DNA of 14,649 nt. Source: Octopus sinensis (lineage: Eukaryota). The stretch is taken from the NCBI RefSeq assembly GCF_006345805.1, contig NW_021825772.1, positions 1 to 14,649 of the forward strand. The letters are read 5' to 3'. The position numbers and the translations under genes were made by a program. Positions 1 to 14,649 of this stretch are shown in pieces; the first letter of the stretch is position 1, and the number at the start of each line of letters is the position of its first letter. The notes under the pieces are model-generated. The model did not search any database and had not been told where the DNA came from. It saw only the letters and a program-made list of their open reading frames with translations.

Positions 1-16
1 GATAGATAGATAGATA
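1..16. repeat. (GATA)n microsatellite, cut by the window edge; abuts the 3' end of LINE copy A
   Basis: Four perfect GATA units at the window start. Confidence 0.95.
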
Positions 17-1449
17 ACTTTCTTTTATTAGCCACACAGGGTTGAATACAGAGGGGACAAATACAAATGCAGAGCTTTTCTTTTCGAGGGTGGAAAAAAA
101 TAAATGTAAGATTGCGATCAAAAGGGATCGAGAGGAGGAAAAAAAAAATAAAAAAAAATCGTGTATCACAGAAAAATGATAAAAACATTGATAAAAACAA
201 GATTGGGTCATCCGTGGGAAGAAAAGCCTACAGAAAAGACCACGGGAACCTCAGTCAGGGAGGAAATAACCACATGAGATCAAAATGCTATCTTTCTTTC
301 TTTTTTACGATCTACAGGATCATGTCAAAATGGTTTCGTCACTCGCACGCACATCTTTGCAACATTCACCCATCTTTTTTTTAATCTTTCGCGAGACAAA
401 ACTTCCCTCTCCATTCTCACCTTCCTTTTCAAGTGGTACTTGAAAAAGTTGATGAGCGATTGGCCAGAGAGGTGGAAGTGTTTGTCTCTAATCCTTTCGC
501 TCGGGTCCACCACACACATTCTTTCACCATGGCCACCAGTACGATGAAAACTGCCTTGTCTTTCCGGTTGAGGGAAAGGGGCGGAGAGCAATTCCCACAA
601 TAGACTCGGCCGATAGGCGGATTCGTCCCACACGTGACAGCAGCCGTTCGGCATAAGCCCACAGGTCTGAAATGGTTGGACATTGCACGAGTGCGTGCAG
701 AACGGTTTCGTCGCTCTGACCGCATCTCGGGCAAGTCGGTCCAGTGTGTCTGGACCGTGTCTGTAGAGCTTATCCCGAACAGGTAATGCTTCTCGATAGC
801 ACTGCCAGGCCAGGGATCTTTGGGGTTGTTCATAGGTCCCGGCCCGAAAGTTGTCCTGAACAGGCGGGTCAGGTGTTCCTCGTCGACGCCCAGACTCTGC
901 CCGAGTTCGTCGTCGCACCTCCTCCACTAATCCTCTATAGAATGCCTTTGTTGTGATGGAGTTGCACAAGTTCGATCCCGGACGCAGAGTTGCTTGAGAG
1001 CAACGCGACACTCGCGGTGCCATTCGCCTAGCCTCGGTCTCTGCTTGATCCATGACTGTAGTTCGTCCAAGGAGACGAGCTGCGGGAAAGCGCGCCGCAC
1101 AAAAGGCGACCACACCTGTTCACCGTTGTCTATGAAGCGCCGGAGATGTCGCAGTCTCAGCGCATGTCTGCGCATCATCAACCACGGCATGCCCAGCCCT
1201 CCATTTAGCGGGTGTTGACAGCAAATGGATCGCCTAACCATCGGAACGTTTCCCTTGCACAAGAAGCGGAAGAGTATACATTCCAGTTTGGTGATGGTAG
1301 GGTCGGGACAAGGCACGACGGTCAGACGATACTCGATGACGGATGCGATGTACGCGTTCGCCACCTCCGCCCGACCTTTTAGGGATAGATTTCTCTCAGC
1401 CCATTTCTGGGTGAGAGTAGCCACACTAGGCGTTATCTCGCCCCAGTTC

Positions 1450-2250
1450 TTCTCCATTTGGAGGTCCGGACCGAACCAGACCCCGAGCAATTTAACCGGT
1501 CCGTCCGTCCAGCGTCCCACGATGGAGACGCTGTTGGACGGCATGGGCCTGCTTCTCCAGGTGCCGAGCCGCAAGCCCACTGACTTTTCCCGGTTAATTT
1601 TTGCTCCCGTTATCGCTTCGTATTCTTTTAGTGTCTCGCCGACCAGCTCTATGTGCTCGTAGCTCGACACTATGACGGTGACGTCATCCGCGTATGCTGA
1701 CACGCTCCTCCCGCATCCCAGCTCTCGTGGCATGCCCCTCAGCGTCGCCAGTTTCCGCAGTAGTGCTCAAGAGTCAATACATACAGCAGCGATGAGAGGG
1801 GGCATCCCTGACGAACCGAACGCATGATGTTAAAAGGTCTGGATAGATGACCATTTACGCGAACTACTGAGCGGATGCCGCTGTATAAGGCAGCGATCCA
1901 ACGCGGAAAACTGGACCGAAACCAGCCGCTTAAGGACAGCCTCGAAGTAGTGATGGTCTACCCTATCGAAGGCTTTTGATTGATCCAAATTGATCAGCGC
2001 CCCACCCATGCCAGGATTCTTAACTACCCTGTCTATGATGTAGCGCATCAGATGGAGGTTGTCATGAATACTTCTACCCGCACGGCGCATGTTTGCGCCT
2101 TGTCGATTAGTTTCTTGATGACAAGCGCCAACCTCTCGGCTAACACCTTGGCCAAAATTTTCAAATCTGCGTTGAGCAGAGTGATGGGCCTGAAAATTAT
2201 ATGACGTCCCCCTTGTTGGGTCTTTCTTAATCAGTGCCACTGATCCTCGC
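1450..2250 (-). other. Reverse transcriptase core of copy A ORF2
   Basis: RPITLLN, DQSKAFDRV, RQGCPLS, YADD and KLLG motifs in the expected order; boundaries approximate. Confidence 0.9.
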
Positions 2251-2999
2251 TTTACAAAGCAGGAATACTCCCGTTTTCTGCCAGTTGCAGTAGACAGCTG
2301 CCAAGACGCCTCCAAACAAGTCTGGCATATGAAATTAAAGTTCGTAGGGCAGACCATCCAAGCCTGGTGACTTGTCTCTCGCGCAGCCTACCATCGCATC
2401 CTGTACGTCCGCAGCTGTGATAGGCCTTTCACAAGACTCCACCTCTTTTGCTGAGAGTCGTGGCAAGGCATGCAGGTAGGCACTAAAGTCCACTCTGCGT
2501 TCTGACCCACCACTTGTCCCAAACAGTTGGGTGAAGTGTTGTTGAAAAGCTCCACACATCCTTTTAGGCTCGAGCAATACGCGCCCCTGTTCATCTATAA
2601 GAGACTTGATGGTGGCTCTGTTGCCTCGTTGCGTCTCCACCACTCGGGCCTCTTGGGCGGCTCCAACTCCTTCGTTCATCAGAGCACGCATCCTAGCTCT
2701 GACAACGCATCCCTCGTGTTTGGCGTTGAGGTGTTGGTCGAGGACCAATCTCGCCGCCAGCACGTTGGACGCGATGCCAGTTCTAAGTGCCTCTTCTAAA
2801 GCCTTAACTAATTCTCCCTCTATTCTATTTCGGTCTAATGCTAGTGCTTTACTGTATCTGACTGATTCTGCTTTAATTGCTCTTTTTAGAGCATACCACC
2901 ATCTGTTGTTGATGATGGTACCCGTCAAAGCTCCCTTAACTAATGTGCTGATCCGGTCCCTGTAAACCTGTCGTGCTGTAAAAGACGCGTTCAGTTTCC

Positions 3000-3727
3000 A
3001 GTAACCAGGACCCTGCCTATGTGTCTTATCTAAGTCAAGTGTACAAGTCACAAACTTGTGATCTGTGTAACTGTCTATATGAAATTGTGGACAACCTACG
3101 CTATTTTTATCTATTGTCCTACAGAATACTCTATCTAAGTATGATCTGGACGACCCGATGCGGTTACTCCATGTCCACATTGGCACATTCGGGTGGTCCA
3201 GTCGGTACCTGTCAGACAGTTGGAAACGTCTGAGCAGGTCTTTGAGGCATTTGCATCCCCTTCTATTGCTATCTCTGCCCACGTAGTCTAGATGCGTGTC
3301 CAGGTGGCATTCCAATCCCCCACTAAAAGTAAAGGACGAGACGTTCCATGAAAGACTCTAGACGTCGAAAGAAATCTGGTCGGCCTGTTAAGGACGGAGC
3401 ATAAACTGCTATCAGTCGAAAAGCACACTCATTGCTGCCATCGACATCCAAGACGACCAGCCTACCCTCCGGGTCTAGGAAAATTGCTCTTACTTTGAGA
3501 TCTAGACTCTTCCGGAGAAGCACCGCGGTGCCACCTCCGCCCATTCTCGGAGAAAAATAAATGTTAAAATGTGTACCGAAACTGTGCTGGAGTGCCCGCA
3601 AGCTGTGGAGTCTGGTCTCACTGATGGCTATGATATTCAGATTTAGTGACTTGATGTCATTTAACAGGTAGCCTTGTTTCCAAGGCGACCCCAAGCCACG
3701 TACATTTATACTGCCTATTCTGAGCAT
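3000..3727 (-). other. APE-type endonuclease domain of copy A ORF2
   Basis: NVRGL, E in SETR, Y in VYAP, GDWN, D in YLDR and TDH catalytic-type motifs; spans two 1-bp frameshifts near 3303 and 3346. Confidence 0.88.
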
Positions 3728-3796
3728 GTTCCGATAAAAAATTGTGTTTTACACACGAAAAGAAAGTGCAAAAATGAAAGAGAGAGAGAGAAAAGG

Positions 3797-5883
3797 TTAC
3801 TTGTTGTTCGAAAGTCCTTTGTTTTTCACCTCACAATCTTCTTCTATGAGGCTTTTGTATAGTTTTTTGATGAATACTTTTGAAATCTCCCTACTGCATT
3901 AGGGTAAAGAGATTTCAGGGTGCTGTATGTGTTCTGTGTTACGTGTATTATTTTAATGTGTTGTGGTGTGTGTTGTGCGTGGGTGGTTACTTGTTTTTAT
4001 GTCGTTTTCAGTATGTTAGTGTGTTTGACCTAATGTGTTCCATTAGGTCGTGGTTGTTTGTGTTTATGGCTGTCAACATTGTTGTGGGGTTTGATGATGG
4101 TGTGTTTGTGTTGATGTGTTTGTTTTCTGTGGATGTTTTTGTTTCGGGAGTGGTGAATCTTCCTGCTTTGTTTGTTATCTTTTCTTTTCTTTTTTTTTCT
4201 TTTCTTCTCCCCCCTGTGGCTATTTGCCAATCTTCTGTGTCTTCTTCGTCTAATGACAATCAGAAGAATCAGAGCTGGAAGAGGGAAAATATTGGGGTCT
4301 ATTGTAGACTGTGTTGATTTTGTTGTTGGTGTTGGTGGGTGAGCGTTAGTTGTGGTGTATGCGGTTTTGGAGGTGGGTGTGGGTATTTTGTGTTTGAGTG
4401 ATTGTAGGTATTGTTGTGTTGTTTGGAGTGTCAATTTTGTGGGGATTTGGAGTAGTAATTGTTTCTTCATTTTCGATGAGTGTCTTTTTGGCAGATCTCC
4501 TTGGTTTGGTAGTTGGTTTATTCTTGGTTGTTGTTGTTGTTGGTGATGTTGCTTCTGTTCTTGGTGCAGTTGGTGTGGTTGTTTGGTTGGTGAGGTTTGT
4601 TTTTTGTTGATTTTCTGTGATTAGTCCTGTTTGTGCAAAACGTGGTGTGGGTAGTAAACCTGGTTTATTTGTTTTTTCCGTTGTTTTTTCGTGCTGTTTT
4701 CTTGCGGCAGATTTGCAGTCTTTTTTTAGGTTTTGTTCACTGCCGCATATGTAGCAACGTGGCCTTCTGCCATCGACGACCACATACACCTTGTGGTCTT
4801 CTGATACACATATCTGGGTGGGTATTTTCTTTATGTCTTCTTGGTTTATATGTAGTAGAAATTCTACATTTTTTCCCACCCAGTTTTTGTGCTCCGTGAC
4901 CGTGGTTTCCAAAATTGTGAAATCTTTCATTTTCACACATAAGGCCTTTACTAACCAGAGATTGTTAGCTATTTTTGGGACGTTGTTTAAAGTGATCTTA
5001 GTCACTTTCTGTCCACGATAGCTTGGTATTAATGTCAGTTCATCTGAATGAAGAGTTAGCGTTGAGAAACGTTTTGCTAACTCTTCAGTGTGGAAAACCA
5101 CTTGTATGTGTGCGAACTTGCTCCACCAGGTCACATAGTCTTTGTAGTTCCAGATGGGTTTCAAGCATTTTTTATTTTGCTTGTGTTAGCCTTCTCTGGA
5201 CTTTTTGTTTTCTTATTAATTATTTTATAAATAATTGTTCTTTTTTTTTCATCTTCTAATATTTCTTCTGGTATGTTTATTTTTACTATACCATCTACTT
5301 CTGTTATTAAAATGTTCGTGTCTTTTATTTGTTGTGCAGTAAAATATACTGTTGTCTTTTTTTCTTTAATCGCCTCGGCGAAATTTGTTGTTGTTTTGTT
5401 ATTGTTGTTGCTGGTGGTGATGTTGTTGTTGGCTGCAGTTGGTAAATTTGGTGTATTTGGTTTGATTGTGCAAGTAGAAAGGGGTGGAAAATTACTTGCA
5501 TAATTTATTTCTGTATTCGAGCAGCTTTTGTCAATTTGTTTGGTGGTCACAGTCTTTTGTTTATTCACTTCAGTTCTTGTTGTTGGAGTAAAACAGGTCT
5601 GAACGGAATTGTTGTTGTTGTTATTGTTGTTTTTGTTGTTGGTGGTAGTGTCAGTGGCAGAAGAGACAGCCGTGGCAGCAGATGTCGAAATGGTGGCGCA
5701 ATTTTTATTTTTGTTGTCATTGTTATTTTTGTTGTTGTTGGTAGTTGAGGTAGTGGATGAGGTGGCGGCGGTGGTGGTGGTGGTGGTGAAGGCGGTGGTG
5801 GTAACAGTAGTAGTCTCTATGTTGTTCTTGCTAGTGGTGGTGTTGGTGACAGGGCTGTTACTACAAGTAGTTGTAGCGTTCAT
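3797..5883 (-). pseudogene. ORF1 of copy A (gag-like nucleic-acid-binding protein with low-complexity T/N arms and one degenerate zinc knuckle), frameshifted
   Basis: ATG at 5883. Track ORFs 5161-5883, 4346-5164, 4030-4470 and 4008-4259 join by small frameshifts. CYICGSEQNLKKDC at 4715-4756. The last segment reads KVFIKKLYKSLIEEDCEVKNKGLSNNK-TAA (3797-3799). The true start may be the ATG at 6013. Confidence 0.75.
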
Positions 5884-6211
5884 TGCAAAGTCATTGATGA
5901 TTTTACTTTGCGCGCATAAATTCTTTTTTTTTTTCTCCTAGCGTTTCCAGTCTAGGAGAAAGCTGGTCGATAAAGGAACGCGACCATCGTTCTACAATAC
6001 AATTTCTTGACATTTTCAAAATGTTGAGAAAGAAATTACAAAAGTTAAATAGGGTTGAAACTGTCCCTAGGGGCGAATTCCTCCCATGGAAAAGCACTCA
6101 AACGAAAGTTGGGTGCCTTACACACCTTATTTACAAAAATGTACACAAAATATGGGCTATAAATAGTCAAAAAAACAACGATTACCTTCGGAGCGAAGTG
6201 ACAGCACGTCC

Positions 6212-6219
6212 ATAGACAG

Positions 6220-6290
<71 letters not shown>

Positions 6291-6310
6291 ATTAGAGATA
6301 TAGATAGATA
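6212..6310. repeat. (GATA)n microsatellite between the 5' end of copy A and the 3' end of copy B
   Basis: Perfect GATA run 6221-6290 with degenerate edges (atagacaga; attagagatatagatagata). Confidence 0.95.
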
Positions 6311-7403
6311 TGTTTCTTTATTAGCCACACAGGGCTGCACACAGATAGAACAAATTACAAGGTAGAGCTTTTCTTTTGAAGGTTTAAAAAAAAAAAAAAG
6401 GGGGAGTTTCGATCAAAAGGGATCGTAAAAGGAGAGAAAGAGGACAAAAAAAGGGGGGTAAAAAAAAAAAAAAAAGGGGGGGAGAGGAAAAAAAAGTTGA
6501 TCAATAGGGATCGTTATCACAGAAATGTCAATATGAAGTGTAAAGGGGAGGACAGGTGAGGTTTACCCGTGGAAAGAAAAACCTACGGAAAAGACCACGG
6601 TAACCTCGGTCAATGAAGTCACATTTTATATTTCTTTTTTTTTTTTTTTTTTTTTTTTGCAAATAAGCAACTCTCTGTTTTCGATTTCTGGGTTCATAGG
6701 ACTATGCTCAAGGTGGCTTCGTCATTCATACGTGCCATTCTTGCTACATTCACCCATCTTTTTTTAAAACATTCGCTAGACAAAACTTGCCTCTCTACTC
6801 TCACTTTCCTTTTCAAGTGGTACTTGAAGAAGTTGATGAGAGATTGACCAGAGAGGAAAGTGTTTGTCTCAAATCCTTTCAGACGCGTCCACCAGATACA
6901 TTCTTTCGCCATAGCCACAAGATGATGAAAATAGCTCTTCCTTCCCGTTTGAAGGAAGGAGGCGTGACAATATTGACGATAGACTCAGCTGATAAACCGA
7001 CTCGTCCCACACGTGACAGCAGTTGTTCGACATAAGCCCACAGGTCGGAAATTGTTGACACTGAACGAGTGCGGCAGAACGGTTTCGTCGCTCTGACCGC
7101 ATCTCGGGCAGGTCGGCCCCGTGTTTCTCGAGCCGTGTCTGTAGAGCTTATCCCGAACGGGTAGCGCTTCTCGGTAGCATTGCCAGGCCAGGGATCTCTG
7201 GAAGTTGTCCATGGGCCCTGGCCCGAAAGTCGTCCCGAACAGGCGGGTCAGGTACTCCTCGTCGACGTCCAGGTTCGCCCCGAGCTCGTCGTCGTACCTC
7301 CCCTCCACTAAACCCCTATAGAATGCTTTGGCTGTGTTGAAGTCACTTAAGGTCGACCCAGGACGGCAGAGTTGCTTGAGAGCAACGCGACACTCGCGGT
7401 GCC

Positions 7404-7404
<1 letters not shown>
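6311..7404 (-). mobile_element. Tx1-group LINE copy B, 5'-truncated (~1.1 kb)
   Basis: ORF2 C-terminus (LAWQCYREALPVRDKL, CPRCGQ, stop TGA at 6694-6696) plus 3' UTR with AATAAA (6317-6322). Homology to copy C stops at ...cactcgcggtgcca (7404), where GATA begins. Confidence 0.92.

Positions 7405-7472
<68 letters not shown>
7405..7472. repeat. (GATA)17 microsatellite between copies B and C
   Basis: 68 bp perfect GATA run. Confidence 0.97.
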
Positions 7473-9582
7473 TGTTTCTTTATTAGCCACACAGGGCTGC
7501 ACACAGATAGAACAAATTACAAGGTAGAGCTTTTCTTTTGAAGGTTTTAAAAAAAAAAATAATAATAATAATAAAATAACAATAAAATAAAATAAAAAAG
7601 GGGGGTCGATCAAAAGGATCTCGTAAAGGAGAGAAAGAGGACAAAAAAAGGGGGGGGTTAAAAAAAAGGGGGAGAGGAAAAAATTGATCAATAGGGATCG
7701 TTATCACACAGAATGTCCATATGAAGTGTAAGGAGGACAGGTGAGGTTTACCCGTGGAAAGAAAAGCCTACGGAAAAGACCACGCTAACCTCGGTCAATG
7801 AAGTCACATGTTATATTTCTTTTTTTTTTTTTTTTTTGCAAATAAGCAACTCTCTGTATTAATTTTTACGGTTCATAGAACCATAGTCAAGGTGGCTTCG
7901 TCATTCACGTGCCATCCTTGCTACATTCACCCATCTTTTTTTAAAACATTCACTAGACAAAACTTGCCTCTCTACTCTCACTTTTTTCTTCAAGTGATAC
8001 TTGAAGAAGTTGATGAGAGATTGACCAGAGAGGAAAGTGTTTGTCTCTAATCCTTTCAGACGCGTCCACCAGATACATTCTTTCGCCATAGCCACAAGTA
8101 TGATAAAATAGCTCTTCCTTCCCGTTTGAAGGAAGGAGCGTGACGATATTAACGATAGACTCGGCTGATAAACCGACACGTCCCACACGTGACAGCAGTC
8201 GTTCGACATAAGCCCACAGGTGGGAAATTGCTGGACACTGCACGATTGCGTGCAGAGCGTTTCGTCGCTCTGCCCGCATCTCGGGCAGGTCGGCCCCGTG
8301 TTTCTCGAGCCATGCCTATAGAGCTTATCCCGAACGGGTAGCGCTTCTCGGTAGCACCGCCAGGCCAGGGATCTCTGGAAGTTGTCCATAGGTCCCGGGC
8401 CGAAAGTCTTTGAAACAGGCGGGTCAGGTATTCCTCGTCGACGCCCAGGTTTGCCCCGAGCTCGTCGTCGTACCTCCCCTCCACTAATCCCCTATAGAAT
8501 GCTTTGGTTGTGTTGAAGTCACTCAAGGTCGACCCGGGACGGCAGAGTTGCTTGAGAGCAACGCGACACTCGCGGTGCCATTCGCCCTTCTTCGGCCTCT
8601 TTTTGATCCACGACTGTAGTTCGGTCATGGAGACGAGTTGCGGGAATGCGTGCCTCACAAACGGCGACCACACCTGTTCACCGTCGTCTACATAGAGCCG
8701 GAGATGTCGCAGTCTCAGCGCGTGTCTGCGCATCATCAACCACGGCATGCCCAGCCCTCCTTTTAACGGGTGTTGACAGCAAATGGATCGCCTGACCATC
8801 GGGACGCATCCTTTCCACAAGAAGCGAAGAGGATGCGTTCTAGTTTGGTGATGGTAGGGTCGGCAAGGTACGACGGTCAGGCGGTAGTAGATGATGGACG
8901 CGATGTACGCGTTCACCACCTCCGCCCGACCTTTTAGGGACAGTTTCCTCTCGGCCCATTGCTGGGCGAGAGTGACCACCTACTCGTTATCTCGTTCCAG
9001 TTCTTCTCCATTTGGAGGTCCGGACCGAACCAGACCCCGAGCAACTCAACCGGGCCGTCTGTCCAGCGTCCCACGACGGAGGTACTGGTGGACGGCATGG
9101 GTTTGCTTCTCCAGGTGCCGAGCCGCAAGCCCACTGACTTTTCCCGGTTGATTTTTTGCTCCTGTCACCGCTTCGTAGTCTTTCAGTGTCTCGCCGACCC
9201 GCTCGATGTGCTCGTGGCTTGACACTATGACGGTGACGTCGTCCGCGTATGCAGACACGCTCGTCCCGCATCCTAATTCTCGCGGGATGCCCCTCAGAGT
9301 CGCCAGCTTCCGCAGTAGTGGCTCAAGAGTCAATACGTATAGAAGCGCCGAGAGGGCATCCCTGACGGACCGAACGTGCAATGTCGAAGGGTCTCGATAG
9401 ATGTCCATTTACGCGAATTACCGAACGGATGCCTCTGTACAAGGCAGCTATCCACCGCGGAAGACGGGACCGAAACCAGCCGCTCTCAGGACTGCCTCCA
9501 AGTATCGATGGTCTACCCTATCAAAGGCTTTCGATTGATCCAAGTTGATCAGGGCCCCACCCATGCCAGGTTCGTTAACTAC
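7473..9582 (-). mobile_element. Tx1-group LINE copy C, 5'-truncated (~2.1 kb), same subfamily as copy B
   Basis: Runs from the RT motif LDQSKAFDRV through YADD (9238-9249), LSLKGRA, GGLGMP and CPRCGQ to the stop at 7873-7875 and a 3' UTR with AATAAA (7479-7484). Homology to copy A ends at ...ttaactac (9582). Frameshifted. Confidence 0.92.
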
Positions 9583-9626
9583 TACGCCATATGCCCGTAG
9601 GCAATTATGGAGTGAATTTTTAGGGC

Positions 9627-10281
9627 TTATAAATCTAATATTTTTCTATTCTTCCTTAATACCGGTTGCTCATATCTGTTCAGACGGTTGTTGTGCTGCT
9701 TCTTTTAGTTTTCATATTTTCCAGTGGTGTTCTCTGTCTATTATTTTAACTTCATCCCACAGGGGGAGGTGGTCTCCATTTTTCCATATATGATCAGCTA
9801 TACCCGATTTATCAATATCTCCCCGTGTCACAGCTTTGCAATGTTCATCTACCTTTATTTTGATGGGTTGGCATGTTTCGCCTTAGTATAACCTACCACA
9901 GCAGCATGGGATGGAGTACAAGCAGTTTTTGTTCATATTCTCTTCTATTGGTGGTTTTACTCGAAGGAGATGTTTGCGAAGTATATTACTTTTGAATACT
10001 GTCCTGATGTCATATGGGCCGCATATCTTTGTATCTCTTCGAAGAAGCCTTTCACATAGAGTAGACAGACTGTGGATAGTTTATTGGCTTCATTCTCTCT
10101 TCTCCTCATAATTGGAGTGGATAGTATGTTTGGGGGTAGTTGTTGCTTAACAGATTGTTACTTAGCTTGATCATTTCTTCGTGGTGGTATCACGATCGCT
10201 ACTTATATTCTTCGCTCAATGTTTTAGGCACTGAGCAATCCCTCTCTTTACACTGTATGGATGGTGGGAATTGAAGTTGAG
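9627..10281 (-). mobile_element. Decayed Penelope-like element fragment (RT thumb plus GIY-YIG endonuclease)
   Basis: Manual translation gives LNFNSHHPYSVKRGIAQCLKH*AKNISS, then NNLLSNNYP, then TVCLLYVKG, GPYDIRTVFKSN, NKNCLYSIPCCCGRLY*GETCQPIKIKVDEHCKAVTRGDIDKSGIADHIWKNGDHLPLWDEVKIIDREHHWKI*KLKEAA. Contains stops and frameshifts, so it is absent from the ORF track. Confidence 0.85.
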
Positions 10282-10335
10282 ACAGACAGAGACGATACAC
10301 AGAGAGATAGACAAAGCAAGAGAGAAAGTATTTCA

Positions 10336-10563
10336 TATTTCTTTACTACCCTCAAGGGGCTAAACACAGAGAGGACAAACAAGGGCAGACAAACGGATTA
10401 AGTCGATTATATCGACCCCAGTGCGTAACTGCTACTTATTTAATCGACCCCGAAAGGATGAAAGGCAAAGTCGACCTCGGCGGAATTTGAACTCAGAACG
10501 TAACGGCAGGCGAAATACGGCTACGCATTTCGTCCGGCGTGCTAACGTTTCTGCCAGCTCGCC
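10336..10563 (-). mobile_element. ~230 bp SINE with tRNA-like head (recalled as an octopus family), with a 20-bp target site duplication
   Basis: Near-identical to 14065-14292. Head ggcgagctggcagaaacgttagc, B-box-like gagttcaaattcc. Flanked by gcaagagagaaagtatttca at 10316-10335 and 10564-10583. Confidence 0.9.
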
Positions 10564-10824
10564 GCAAGAGAGAAAGTATTTCAGTTAACGAATGTGTCCA
10601 TCACAAGGAGTGAAAAAAATATCTTGATAGCAGAGCTATAATGATTTCCACCCCTTCTCCATGGAAAGAAAAAAACCGCTGTAGAATGATTAGTAATACA
10701 GACAAGGAGCTTACCGCATGGAGGTAAAATTGCAAAAAGTTTGGCGAATGTAAGGCATAGCTCTAATGCGGGTCATTTGAAGGCAATGAAATTATTATCA
10801 GTGGCCTCCTTTGTTGGTTTAAAC

Positions 10825-11093
10825 AAGTGGTTCTCAGCCATTTTTTGCCTACGGACATTTTTGATTCTTATTTTACTCAAATGGACCCTCCTAGACATTC
10901 CATGTTTAGAAATCCTATTGTACTTTTATAATTAAATATTATTAGCAGATGTATAAAAAAAATTGATAAAACGCTTTTTTTTGTATTGTAGATATATAAC
11001 CACAAATTTTAACAATAAAATTTTATGTGAACTCCCAAGGGCCATATGGACCCATCCCAGCAGTGCCATATGAACCGCTATTGAGAACCAATG
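10825..11093. mobile_element. hAT-type MITE (non-autonomous DNA transposon), 269 bp
   Basis: Imperfect TIRs aagtggttctcag (10825-10837) and ttgagaaccaatg (11081-11093), resembling CAGTGGTTCTCAA. Flanks gtttaaac (10817-10824) and gtttaaag (11094-11101) match 7/8, fitting an 8-bp hAT TSD. AT-rich non-coding interior. Confidence 0.72.
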
Positions 11094-11297
11094 GTTTAAA
11101 GTAATCATGAGTGCATTGTACATTGTCCTGAGACTGATAGAGTAAAAAAAAAATGAACGTTTTAGTGAAGTTTCGTTGATTGTGTGACATTAAATTGTAT
11201 CCGGCAATGAGGTTCCACCTCCGAAGTTCATGAGTTCTGATGCAGTGTGGAACAACCCCTTAGTCAACACTACTTTCAAGAGTACTCTGACGATTTT

Positions 11298-11395
11298 TGG
11301 TGTTGGTGGTGGTGGTGGTGGTGGTGATGATGAAGGTCGTAGTAGTTGTGATGGTGGTATTGGTGGTGATGGTGACTGTGGTATTGCTGCTGCTG
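11298..11395. repeat. Compound trinucleotide microsatellite (GGT/GAT/GCT)
   Basis: Visible GGT, GAT and GCT runs. Confidence 0.85.
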
Positions 11396-11762
11396 TTGCT
11401 GTTACAGTTGAGCTGTTGAGCGAAGCTGTCTTCGTTCCAGTGGGAGAAGTCCGAAAAGTGGTCCTTTGCTATTCGTAATACCCGCAGAAGAGAAAGCAGG
11501 TCAACCCCCGACACCGAGAGCAACCGACGGATGGATGAATGCGCATCCAGGCTCAGCGGTTGCGTAGAAAGTCGGGGGCATGAAACAGGAAGAAAGAGTG
11601 AGAGAAAGTTGGGGCGAAAGAGTACAACAGGGGTCGCCACCACCCCTTGCCGGAGCCTCGTGGAGCTTTAGGGGTTTTCGCTCAATAAACACATACAATG
11701 CCCGGTCTGGGAATCGAAACCGCGAGTCCGCTGCCCTAACCACTGGGCCATTGCGCCTCCAC
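11396..11762 (-). mobile_element. tRNA-derived SINE of a second family, inserted in a CAG/CTG repeat
   Basis: Minus-strand head gtggaggcgcaatggcccagtggttagggcagcgg with A box TGGCCCAGTGG and B-box-like GTTTCGATTCC. Candidate 12-bp TSD ttgctgctgctg at 11384-11395 and 11763-11774. Confidence 0.8.
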
Positions 11763-11886
11763 TTGCTGCTGCTGCTTGTGACGATGATGAGGATGACGAT
11801 GATGACGACCATCACCCCCAACACCATCACCACCCATCACCACCACCACCATCACGACGACGACGACGATGATGATGGTGGTGTGG
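11763..11886. repeat. Compound trinucleotide microsatellite (GCT/GAT/CAC/GAC/GGT)
   Basis: Visible runs of these triplets. Confidence 0.85.
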
Positions 11887-12491
11887 TTGATAGTAAGGGA
11901 AATTCAATAATGGTCCGGGGTGGTGTTACTTGTCAAAGCCCCCAAGAATAAAAGATTGTCCCATAGTTAAAGGCATACAGGACTCAGAAGATGGCAGGCC
12001 CTTAGATATTTATCATAAAGGCTCATCAGCCGACATCACGTGAACCATATACTGGCAGAAACAACGAAAAGCTTCTGCTGTGTTTTCTGCAGAAAAATTA
12101 TGTAGCTTCAGATTTTGTCATGAAAATCCATAACCGATGTCACCTGTAAAAACAGACATGGTACGTGAAGAGAGCTGGAGAGCATTGTAGAACTGGAAAC
12201 AAACATAGGGAAGAATATGAGAAAGCTTTTTTCTAAGATGGCAAACAGTTTACGAAGTTTTATTGATTGAGAAAAGAAAAAAAAAGAGTAGAAAATTTTG
12301 GAGGATTCCTTAGACTTAACAAGTCTTCAAAAGGTCCAGCTACAATTTAGGAAGTGAAAGAAGTTGCTGGGTGAAACATGCATCTTTTGTTTTCAGAAGT
12401 GTATTTTTTGAAAGAGAATCAGCGGTGAGTAAAGTCATCCAGTTGATGAAGTGGTAAGTTTCCTCTGCTGTTGCTTCTGTTGGTGCTGATT

Positions 12492-12515
12492 TTGTTGTTG
12501 TTGTTGTTGTTGTTG
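12492..12515. repeat. (TTG)8 microsatellite
   Basis: Perfect 24-bp run. Confidence 0.9.
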
Positions 12516-12964
12516 GCAAAATACCTTGTTTGCGCTACTTCGGAATAGCTGTGTGTGAATAGCATGGTTCCTTGGCTGTTGTGGGATTAGATTCTGTGAG
12601 GAATATTAAGAAATATACTTAAGAAGCCAACTTCCGTCATCGGTATATTTCTTTTGTGAAATCGAGAAGAAACTCGCTGAATGTTGGTGGTGAGTTTGGT
12701 TTTCCTACAAGCTTCTCCCATTCAAGGGAAATCTATTGATACGATATTGATTTTTGTTAAAGGGATGTTTTCTTACCAAAATTTGAAGATGGAAACAAAA
12801 GTTGAGGGAGACGAATATAAGAAGGAAAGAAGAGGAAAATGAGGAGGAGGAGAGTAAAATGGTGAAATAAAGTGGGAGTGAGAGACAAATAAAATAGTGT
12901 CGCTAAGGAGTTGAAATCTAGATGCAACGTTACTGCTATTACATTAGATAAATTTATGTTCGAA

Positions 12965-13130
12965 GTAAGAAATAACAATATGAACAACGTGAACAGCAAC
13001 AAGAATTACAACAATGCGAAATACCTAAAGACAACAATAAAAATAATAAAAACAGTGGTAAAAGCAGCAACAATAACAACAACAGCTAACACTACTACAA
13101 TAAGAGGGACACAGCCAACAGCATCAACAC
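12965..13130. repeat. AAC/AAT-rich low-complexity tract
   Basis: Degenerate aac/aat/cag triplet runs. Confidence 0.6.
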
Positions 13131-13589
13131 ACACGCATTTATTTTTAATGAGATTTTCCAGCTGTCTTCGTCTCGAATGTTTGTGAAAGAAAATATAAAT
13201 GCAACGATAGTTCAGCAACAGGTCGGTCAAACATTATAAAAACAACCTCAAACGCAACCAACATAGCCAAGGCTTTCTATGTGGAAATCGGTTCCATCGC
13301 CGGTCAAAATATTGACAAGGGTAAACTAATAGTCAACGACAAGAATTAACGGGAAAAACATGAGATTCAGCTTTCAGAAATACAAGAGGCATGCAGTATA
13401 GCAAGTATTACAAGACGGCAATTTTGTCGGATGTGTCACAGAGGGTTATTCAAAGAATCGATGAACGGTAACCTATTGATGAATAACTCATTGAGCAGAG
13501 AAACAAACACACAGAAAGGGAAAGCAATGTTTGAAATCTCTGTGAGAGAGAAAAGGCATCATTCGTTGTGAATATTCCAACTATCTGCG

Positions 13590-13660
13590 CTCTGAGTTCA
13601 AATACAGCCGACATCAACTCTGCTTTACATCTTTTATGGGGTCGATAAAAGAAGTATCAA
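13590..13660 (+). mobile_element. Old, diverged internal fragment of the ~230 bp SINE family
   Basis: tctgagttcaaatacagccgacatcaactctgctttacatcttttatggggtcgataaaagaagta aligns by eye to SINE ...gagttcaaattcagccgagatcgactcggcctttcatcctttcggggtcgataaattaagta. Confidence 0.7.
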
Positions 13661-14064
13661 TCGAGGTTGATGAACTGGTGGAACTTAAGAATGCCGGTCC
13701 AGATGTCTTGCGGTATTTATTCCGGCTTTTTGCATTCATAATTAAATTCCTGCTACTCGGTAGAGTTAGTCCATCACCCGGTTTAATACCACCACTTGGC
13801 AATTTTGGTTACTTTTAGTGGAGTCCATTTTGTCGTAAGTATTTAAGTGAGGTTTCGTGTTCGGGGCTACCTTTCTCCCCTCTTCTTACCAGTCCTTGAG
13901 GCCCTGTAAAGGGTCATGAACATTACGTTCCCCTATACTTAAAAATATATATAAAGAAGATATACATTACCCATGGAGAACATTTTGTTGCAGCAGATGC
14001 CAGATTTTCCAGTTGCCGAACCGCTTAAGAACAAGGATTCCACACTTATACTAAGATATATGAG

Positions 14065-14292
14065 GGCGGCGAGCTGGCAGAAACATTAGCATGCCGGGCG
14101 AAATTCCTAGCGGTATTTCGTCTGCCGTTACGTTGAGTTCAAATTCAGCCGAGATCGACTCGGCCTTTCATCCTTTCGGGGTCGATAAATTAAGTACCAG
14201 TTGCGCACTGGGGTCGATATAATCGACTTAATCCGTTTGTTTGTCCTTGTTTGTCCTCTCTGTGTTTAGCCCCTTGTGGGTAATAAAGAAAT
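14065..14292 (+). mobile_element. ~230 bp SINE, complete copy, with a 9-bp target site duplication
   Basis: ggcggcgagctggcag...gagttcaaattc...gtgggtaataaagaaat. Flanked by atatatgag at 14056-14064 and 14293-14301. Near-identical to the reverse complement of 10336-10563. Confidence 0.9.
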
Positions 14293-14649
14293 ATATATGA
14301 GCAGATGTGTGATAAAGGTAACAGTTGGGCGTGCCTACAAGACAAACTTACCGATGGCTAATTGTGATTGTTTTGCTTGATGTAGCTAAAATTAAGATTC
14401 AAAAAGTAGACTGGTTTGATGTAGACATATCCCTGATTAGATATGGCCAATGCTAACTAGAAAAGGAGCAAAAATTATCTAGTTAATGGAACAACCACAT
14501 GGAATTCGGTTAAATATAACGCTCGAAGGTGAACGACCTGTGACGCAAACCACTGAATGGCTTTCTGCTAAAATGAAAGAGTGAAAGCGCGAAAGAGGAA
14601 GGACCTCCCCCCACTCCCCTACCTCACCTACTGCACTCACACTTTCTAC

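Follow-up and report, generated by a model that had tools for sequence, protein, structure and literature searches.

Three head-to-tail LINE copies joined by GATA repeats in Octopus sinensis: a candidate case of serial insertion into (GATA)n tracts

A 14,649-nucleotide stretch of the Octopus sinensis genome (RefSeq assembly GCF_006345805.1, contig NW_021825772.1, positions 1 to 14,649; hereafter the window) carries in its left two thirds three copies of a single family of long interspersed nuclear elements (LINEs) with an APE endonuclease and a reverse transcriptase (RT). The copies, designated A, B, and C, are all on the minus strand, lie head to tail in one orientation, are all decayed, and are linked to each other by (GATA)n tracts, which read (TATC)n on the element strand (Table 1). 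The array is best read as the product of serial target-primed insertion into such tracts, and targeting was probably, on a slight balance, mixed or dominated by pairing between the tail of the element RNA and the target repeat.

The preliminary description of the window, made from its letters, had reported three LINE copies in the same orientation with the repeat at all three 3' ends and at two of the three 5' ends, and direct reading of the junctions bore this out. On the element strand, copy C ends in ...AATAAAGAAACA, followed by (TATC)17T and then by GGCACCGCGAG, the 5' end of B. Copy B likewise ends in ...AATAAAGAAACA, followed by TATCTATCTATATCTCTAAT(TCTA)17TCT and then by CTGTCTATGGACG, the 5' end of A, and copy A ends in ...AAAAGAAAGT, followed by (TATC)4 and the window edge. 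The sense-strand 3' end of the family is thus always ...AATAAAGAAAC/GN and then (TATC)n in the three copies. These 3' junctions are precise and keep the same repeat register in two subfamilies 15% apart. The 5' ends of A and B each abut the tract directly behind the next copy upstream (B and C, respectively), and apart from the repeat there are zero bases between neighboring copies.

GATA tracts occur in the window exclusively at LINE 3' ends. The GATA 16-mer was found 29 times, confined to the three tracts and to the plus strand, compared to 0 occurrences in 200 shuffles of the sequence. The tract between B and A consists of 17 perfect units (6221-6288) and a degenerate stretch adjoining B. 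Both internal tracts therefore contain exactly 17 perfect units, although the surrounding LINE copies are 7-16% diverged; chance, a length ceiling or shared history may account for the equal lengths.

Table 1. Features of the LINE array and of the short interspersed elements (SINEs) in the window. ORF, open reading frame; UTR, untranslated region.
Feature	Position	Strand	Description
(GATA)4	1-16	+	(TATC)n on the element strand, directly adjoining the copy A 3' end; runs off the window edge
Copy A	17-6219	-	Full-length-looking, dead; complete layout
Copy A 3' UTR	17-322	-	About 300 bp
Copy A ORF2	~323-3727	-	APE endonuclease at the 3727 end, RT with YADD
Copy A spacer	3728-4345	-	About 620 bp, between ORF1 and ORF2
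Copy A ORF1	4346-5883	-	Frameshift near 5164
Copy A 5' UTR (leader)	5884-6219	-	336 bp
GATA tract	6220-6310	+	Links B (3' end) to A (5' end); 91% pure
Copy B	6311-7403	-	5'-truncated; C-terminal part of ORF2, downstream of the RT domain
GATA tract	7404-7472	+	Links C (3' end) to B (5' end); 17 perfect units (7405-7472)
Copy C	7473-~9624	-	5'-truncated inside the RT domain
SINE copy 1	10336-10563	-	228 bp; 20-bp target-site duplication GCAAGAGAGAAAGTATTTCA at 10316-10335 and 10564-10583
SINE fragment	13588-13660	+	Same SINE
SINE copy 2	14065-14292	+	228 bp; 9-bp target-site duplication ATATATGAG at 14056-14064 and 14293-14301

In copy A, the N-terminal half of ORF1 is of low complexity and the protein contains a CCHC-like knuckle, CYICGSEQNLKKDC; the C-terminal CPRC...H...C motif of ORF2 is CPRCGQSDETVLHALVQCP, near 677-733. 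The truncated copies were placed on P0001, the nearest database protein (66% identity, 912 amino acids, intact but without the endonuclease end). Copy B, with its 3' UTR of about 390 bp, begins near residue 676 of P0001. For copy C the start is near residue 328 (PGRSIHDNLHL in a tblastn search with P0001). Its presence agreed with the preliminary description, and its end did not: DNA similarity to A fades at 9582, the end given there, and protein similarity extends about 40 bp more, to ~9624. No significant protein or DNA similarity to further LINE sequence was detected beyond this point up to 14649. DNA identity is 84% between A and B, 85% between A and C, and 91-93% between B and C, and copy A is of a different subfamily from B and C.

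That copy B is truly 5'-truncated and has the repeat as its upstream neighbor was confirmed, and since a truncated copy is preceded by it, that repeat is not part of B. The earlier claim that the upstream repeat must be target DNA accordingly holds for the insertion of B. It does not extend to the origin of the tract, which runs on from the 3' end of C without a break and may have been the tail of C. Among the two 5'-truncated copies, the repeat precedes B, where it is the tract behind C, and does not precede C.

The copies have decayed independently. When the three copies were aligned with the intact coding sequence from the nearest relative (L001/P0001), copy A carried at least 10 private frameshifting indels in the last 1740 bp of ORF2, copy B 3 in 704 bp, and copy C 13 in 1750 bp. 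No frameshift common to B and C was present in these alignments, and a single MAFFT gap in the same column for both corresponds to two different 1-bp deletions about 6 bp apart. Copy B therefore did not arise by duplication of C after C had decayed, and a late tandem duplication of C giving rise to B was ruled out. Frameshift densities were 5.7, 4.3, and 7.4 per kb for A, B, and C, respectively, which are not separable. These levels of decay are too alike for an order of ages and fit growth of the array downstream into the tails as well as upstream into a pre-existing tract.

By domain content and best solved relative, the family is assigned to the L1 superfamily, which comprises the L1 and Tx1 clades. 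For the searches, ORF2 of copy A was stitched by hand across its frameshifts. Pfam Exo_endo_phos matched window positions 3727-3323 in this ORF (E 3.5e-6), RVT_1 was matched in copies A and C, and the motif SAYADDVTV is present. The stitched ORF2 matched human L1 endonuclease chains in the PDB, its best solved relative was human L1 ORF2p (residues 4-853, spanning endonuclease and RT, E 1.8e-55, 191 bits), and R2 was matched at E ~1e-11. A bivalve consensus labelled L1-Tx1 scored 183 bits, about the same as human L1 ORF2p, and the scores are thus uninformative as to Tx1 versus L1. A homologue search with ORF1 returned no homologues, and no Pfam domain was found in it. In a published mollusc LINE tree, all octopus L1-superfamily clusters fall in Tx1 (PMC10294476), and Data S1 of the same source has the octopus RT clusters as sister to a group with Tx1_XT and KoshiTn1. 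Tx1 membership of the window family has indirect support, all of it from this tree. Thirteen active L1-Tx1 families are described in O. vulgaris (PMC13282606).

The protein P0001, for which PF13966 (zf-RVT type) is on record, comes from a 3.1-kb contig in an NCBI assembly of very short contigs, and the contig breaks off 113 bp past the stop codon, short of any tail. At about 40% identity, the next relatives have no association with GATA. L002 and L017 are without a microsatellite tail, and L016 has an A-rich/GAAA tail (6600-6660) only about 20 bp past the stop codon, with almost no 3' UTR. L014 (ENA ERZ25071366 ctg14421c, 1-15346) is assembled as repeated ~6.5-kb units, arranged head to tail and 99.2% identical to one another; the unit junctions are without a microsatellite, its two ends share a 2354-bp overlap with 100% identity, and it may represent either a tandem LINE array or a LINE assembled as a circle. 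The GATA link is therefore specific to the lineage in the window. A metagenome scan with the 18-nt 3' end CCCTGTGTGGCTAATAAA gave 11 matches, all by chance and without TATC or LINE context, and it was set aside.

A SINE in the right part of the window (two copies and a fragment) resembles the abundant tRNA-derived SINEs of octopus. The final ~47 nt of SINE and LINE are collinear and anchored at the end, with about 83% identity and an alignment score of 50 versus 16 ± 2 for shuffles. Such a common 3' end is the classic signature of a LINE/SINE partnership, which it suggests here, and it points to the LINE lineage that would mobilize the SINE. Copy 2 of the SINE ends ...TGTGGGTAATAAAGAAAT and continues without TATC. 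The target-site duplications are ordinary and lie at non-GATA sites. Their starts match the 3' end of the SINE RNA (GAAATA for copy 1, and ATAT), and these short matches fit annealing-assisted priming. SINE copy 1 adjoins a degenerate GAGA/GACA/GATA-type tract (10279-10335). A conserved 3' hairpin common to LINE and SINE was considered and rejected, the consensus fold having -0.7 kcal/mol and no compensatory pairs.

Elsewhere in the window, which is rich in other repeats (SINEs and trinucleotide tracts), a second SINE-like element with a tRNA-like head is located at 11440-11770 on the minus strand, with no ARAGORN or Rfam call. It is flanked by trinucleotide tracts at 11298-11374 and 11771-11890, one of them (TGG)n and the other (GAT/GAC/CAC)n. 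The tRNA and Rfam scans of the window gave no matches.

According to the favored explanation, target-primed reverse transcription would place new copies in (GATA)n/(TATC)n tracts. The nicked (GATA)n strand would provide the 3'-OH, and its GATA end could pair with the UAUC repeats in which the element RNA would end. Younger copies would come to lie immediately after older ones in the same orientation, and the array would lengthen head to tail. As each copy would leave a tract at its own 3' end, the array would feed itself. At least two such insertions would have taken place at the window locus, followed by decay of all three copies. Targeting would owe at least as much to pairing of the RNA tail with the target repeat as to sequence-specific cutting. 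The anatomy, the junctions, and the independent decay of the copies are observed directly; the order of insertion, the UAUC on the RNA, and the pairing step are inferred. Template repeats that fix the priming site have been proposed for RTE-type elements (PMC6007223). The hexamer AATAAA is found on the minus strand at 28-33, 6321-6326, and 7483-7488, which places it 6-8 nt from the 3' end in every LINE copy; the SINE contains it as well. With this signal so near the element end, cleavage by the Pol II machinery would fall inside the TATC tract and would leave UAUC on the element RNA.

Several observations weigh against this explanation. The 5' end of copy C joins unrelated, non-GATA DNA, and the family may also insert elsewhere, or the target DNA may have been lost. 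Frameshift density leaves the ages of A, B, and C inseparable, and the basis for targeting is three copies at one locus. The SINE ends ...AAAGAAAT(A) with TATC after neither copy, which would be unusual if UAUC were required at the 3' end of the template. The SINE can be read in two ways: it may have been mobilized by a sister LINE family without GATA homing, or the machinery may not be GATA-restricted, with the GATA association of the LINE coming from its RNA tail. Both readings weigh against treating GATA-specific cutting as established.

It is possible, if somewhat unlikely, that the endonuclease itself recognizes and cuts GATA/TATC, as is assumed of Kibi for TC and of Koshi for TTC, and that the family colonizes GATA microsatellites already present in the genome. 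The TATC at both ends would then be target DNA and not a tail encoded by the RNA. The repeat on three of three 3' flanks and two of three 5' flanks is what such an enzyme would leave, but both GATA-joined 5' ends lie behind another copy and no tract is demonstrably older than the first copy. The sole outward-facing 5' end, that of copy C, is off GATA, and this was counted in favor of tail pairing over endonuclease specificity. Target choice in Tx1 families is generally ascribed to the endonuclease (PMC4494074), and the published mollusc tree puts octopus L1-superfamily RTs by Tx1_XT and KoshiTn1 (PMC10294476); the relatives at about 40% identity, however, are without a GATA association. The SINE bears on this explanation from both sides. 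It stops exactly where the unique sequence of the LINE stops, which fits a start of reverse transcription at ...AAAGAAA with no TATC in the template, but it is inserted at non-GATA sites with 20-bp and 9-bp duplications, unexpected if the same endonuclease were at work. Mixed or pairing-dominated targeting is thus favored over strict endonuclease specificity. The preliminary description had proposed a GATA-specific APE endonuclease and repeated insertion into one tract. Serial insertion into (GATA)n is indeed the simplest account, though the tracts seen here lie behind resident copies; homing of the family to GATA tracts is likely, GATA specificity of the endonuclease is pure inference, and a genomic GATA microsatellite that predates the first copy is unproven.

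A chain formed with no repeated targeting at all, in which TATC is simply a tail and the copies were linked either in a single event, the RT jumping from one LINE RNA to the 3' end of another, or by tandem duplication or unequal exchange between GATA tails shortly after insertion, is considered quite improbable. Such a chain would account for copies that all point one way, for a 5' end of C off GATA, for their similar decay, and for two internal tracts of exactly 17 perfect units, and the 5' junction of B, repeat followed by mid-ORF2, would be the product of duplicating the 3' part of C together with its tail. Against this, B and C have no disabling mutation in common, and copy A, of a different subfamily (84-85% identity), is beyond the reach of duplication. 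Jumping onto polyadenylated RNAs should leave A-runs between the copies, where none are present, and tail exchange alone does not put a 5'-truncated copy behind a tail.

Passive accumulation by chance in a repeat-rich, low-recombination region, with the GATA tracts as unrelated microsatellites, is scarcely credible despite the density of other repeats (SINEs and trinucleotide tracts) in the window, because only repeat bases lie between the copies, all three have the same orientation and the same junction register, and the tracts are confined to LINE 3' ends. The probability of two chance landings in tracts of 70-90 bp in a large genome is negligible. Since chance is negligible and both tail exchange and template jumping fit poorly, serial insertion remains the best reading of the array.

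A further, more speculative proposal, which we regard as unlikely, is a mollusc Tx1 lineage with a truly GATA/TATC-specific endonuclease, where the same lineage or a sister supplies the 3' end of the SINE. If true, the expansion of SINEs in octopus would be tied to a target-specific LINE family. Serial insertion into GATA tracts, if true, would account for part of the GATA tracts and LINE clusters of cephalopods. Borne out genome-wide, it would add a new mixed-base tetranucleotide target and a mollusc example to the short list of microsatellite-homing elements, and natural variation in the target choice of APE endonucleases is relevant to LINE-based site-directed insertion. Current understanding is not overturned, as microsatellite-targeting Tx1 elements, tail repeats, and the sharing of tails between LINEs and SINEs are all established.

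Full-text literature searches, with Repbase and Dfam outside their scope, turned up neither a LINE that targets GATA nor a study of target choice in cephalopod Tx1 elements. The known microsatellite-homing Tx1 elements are Kibi for (TC)n, Koshi for (TTC)n, and crocodilian families for (TTCC)n/(TTTC)n (Kojima and Fujiwara 2004; PMC4494074, PMC3812793), and the criterion for a microsatellite-specific family in Kojima 2015 was the same repeat on more than 20% of flanks genome-wide (PMC4494074). Like these, the window family is an APE-type LINE of the L1/Tx1 superfamily. The known families have a single microsatellite on either flank, also around 5'-truncated copies, and can stack inside one tract; in the window, A and the truncated B have the repeat on either flank, and the truncated C has it on the 3' flank only. 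Unlike theirs, its repeat is the tetranucleotide GATA/TATC, which is not made of purines or pyrimidines only, its host is a cephalopod, and its putative specificity is drawn from three copies at one locus, not from a genome-wide survey. Other LINEs that home to microsatellites are Dong of the R4 clade, (TAA)n, and Waldo, (ACAY)n, and Mino, (AC)n, of the R1 clade (PMC3812793). They too home to a microsatellite and interrupt it, whereas their clades and repeat units differ and the endonuclease of Dong is restriction-like, not APE.

LINEs with element-encoded microsatellite-like 3' tails and partner SINEs are known among the RTE, CR1/L2, and Rex types (Ohshima and Okada 2005; PMC6007223; PMC2887409). 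The window family resembles them in the short repeat behind the 3' end of every copy, in the SINE with a LINE 3' terminus, and in the proposal that base pairing between the tail repeat and the nicked target determines where priming starts. The SINEs of these elements normally carry the tail repeat, whereas the window SINE does not, and two of the three 5' ends in the window, those of A and B, border on the repeat, copy C alone having an unrelated 5' flank. Nor are the tail-repeat LINEs known for head-to-tail chaining via their tails. The target of R1 is a unique site in 28S rDNA, and the R1 endonuclease is sequence-specific, which sets R1 apart from the window family. In read-through transcripts of R1Bm (Anzai et al. 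2005), target sequence at the 3' end of the RNA reportedly pairs with the nicked target and fixes the start of reverse transcription, and the same mechanism would operate in the proposed pairing of UAUC with GATA.

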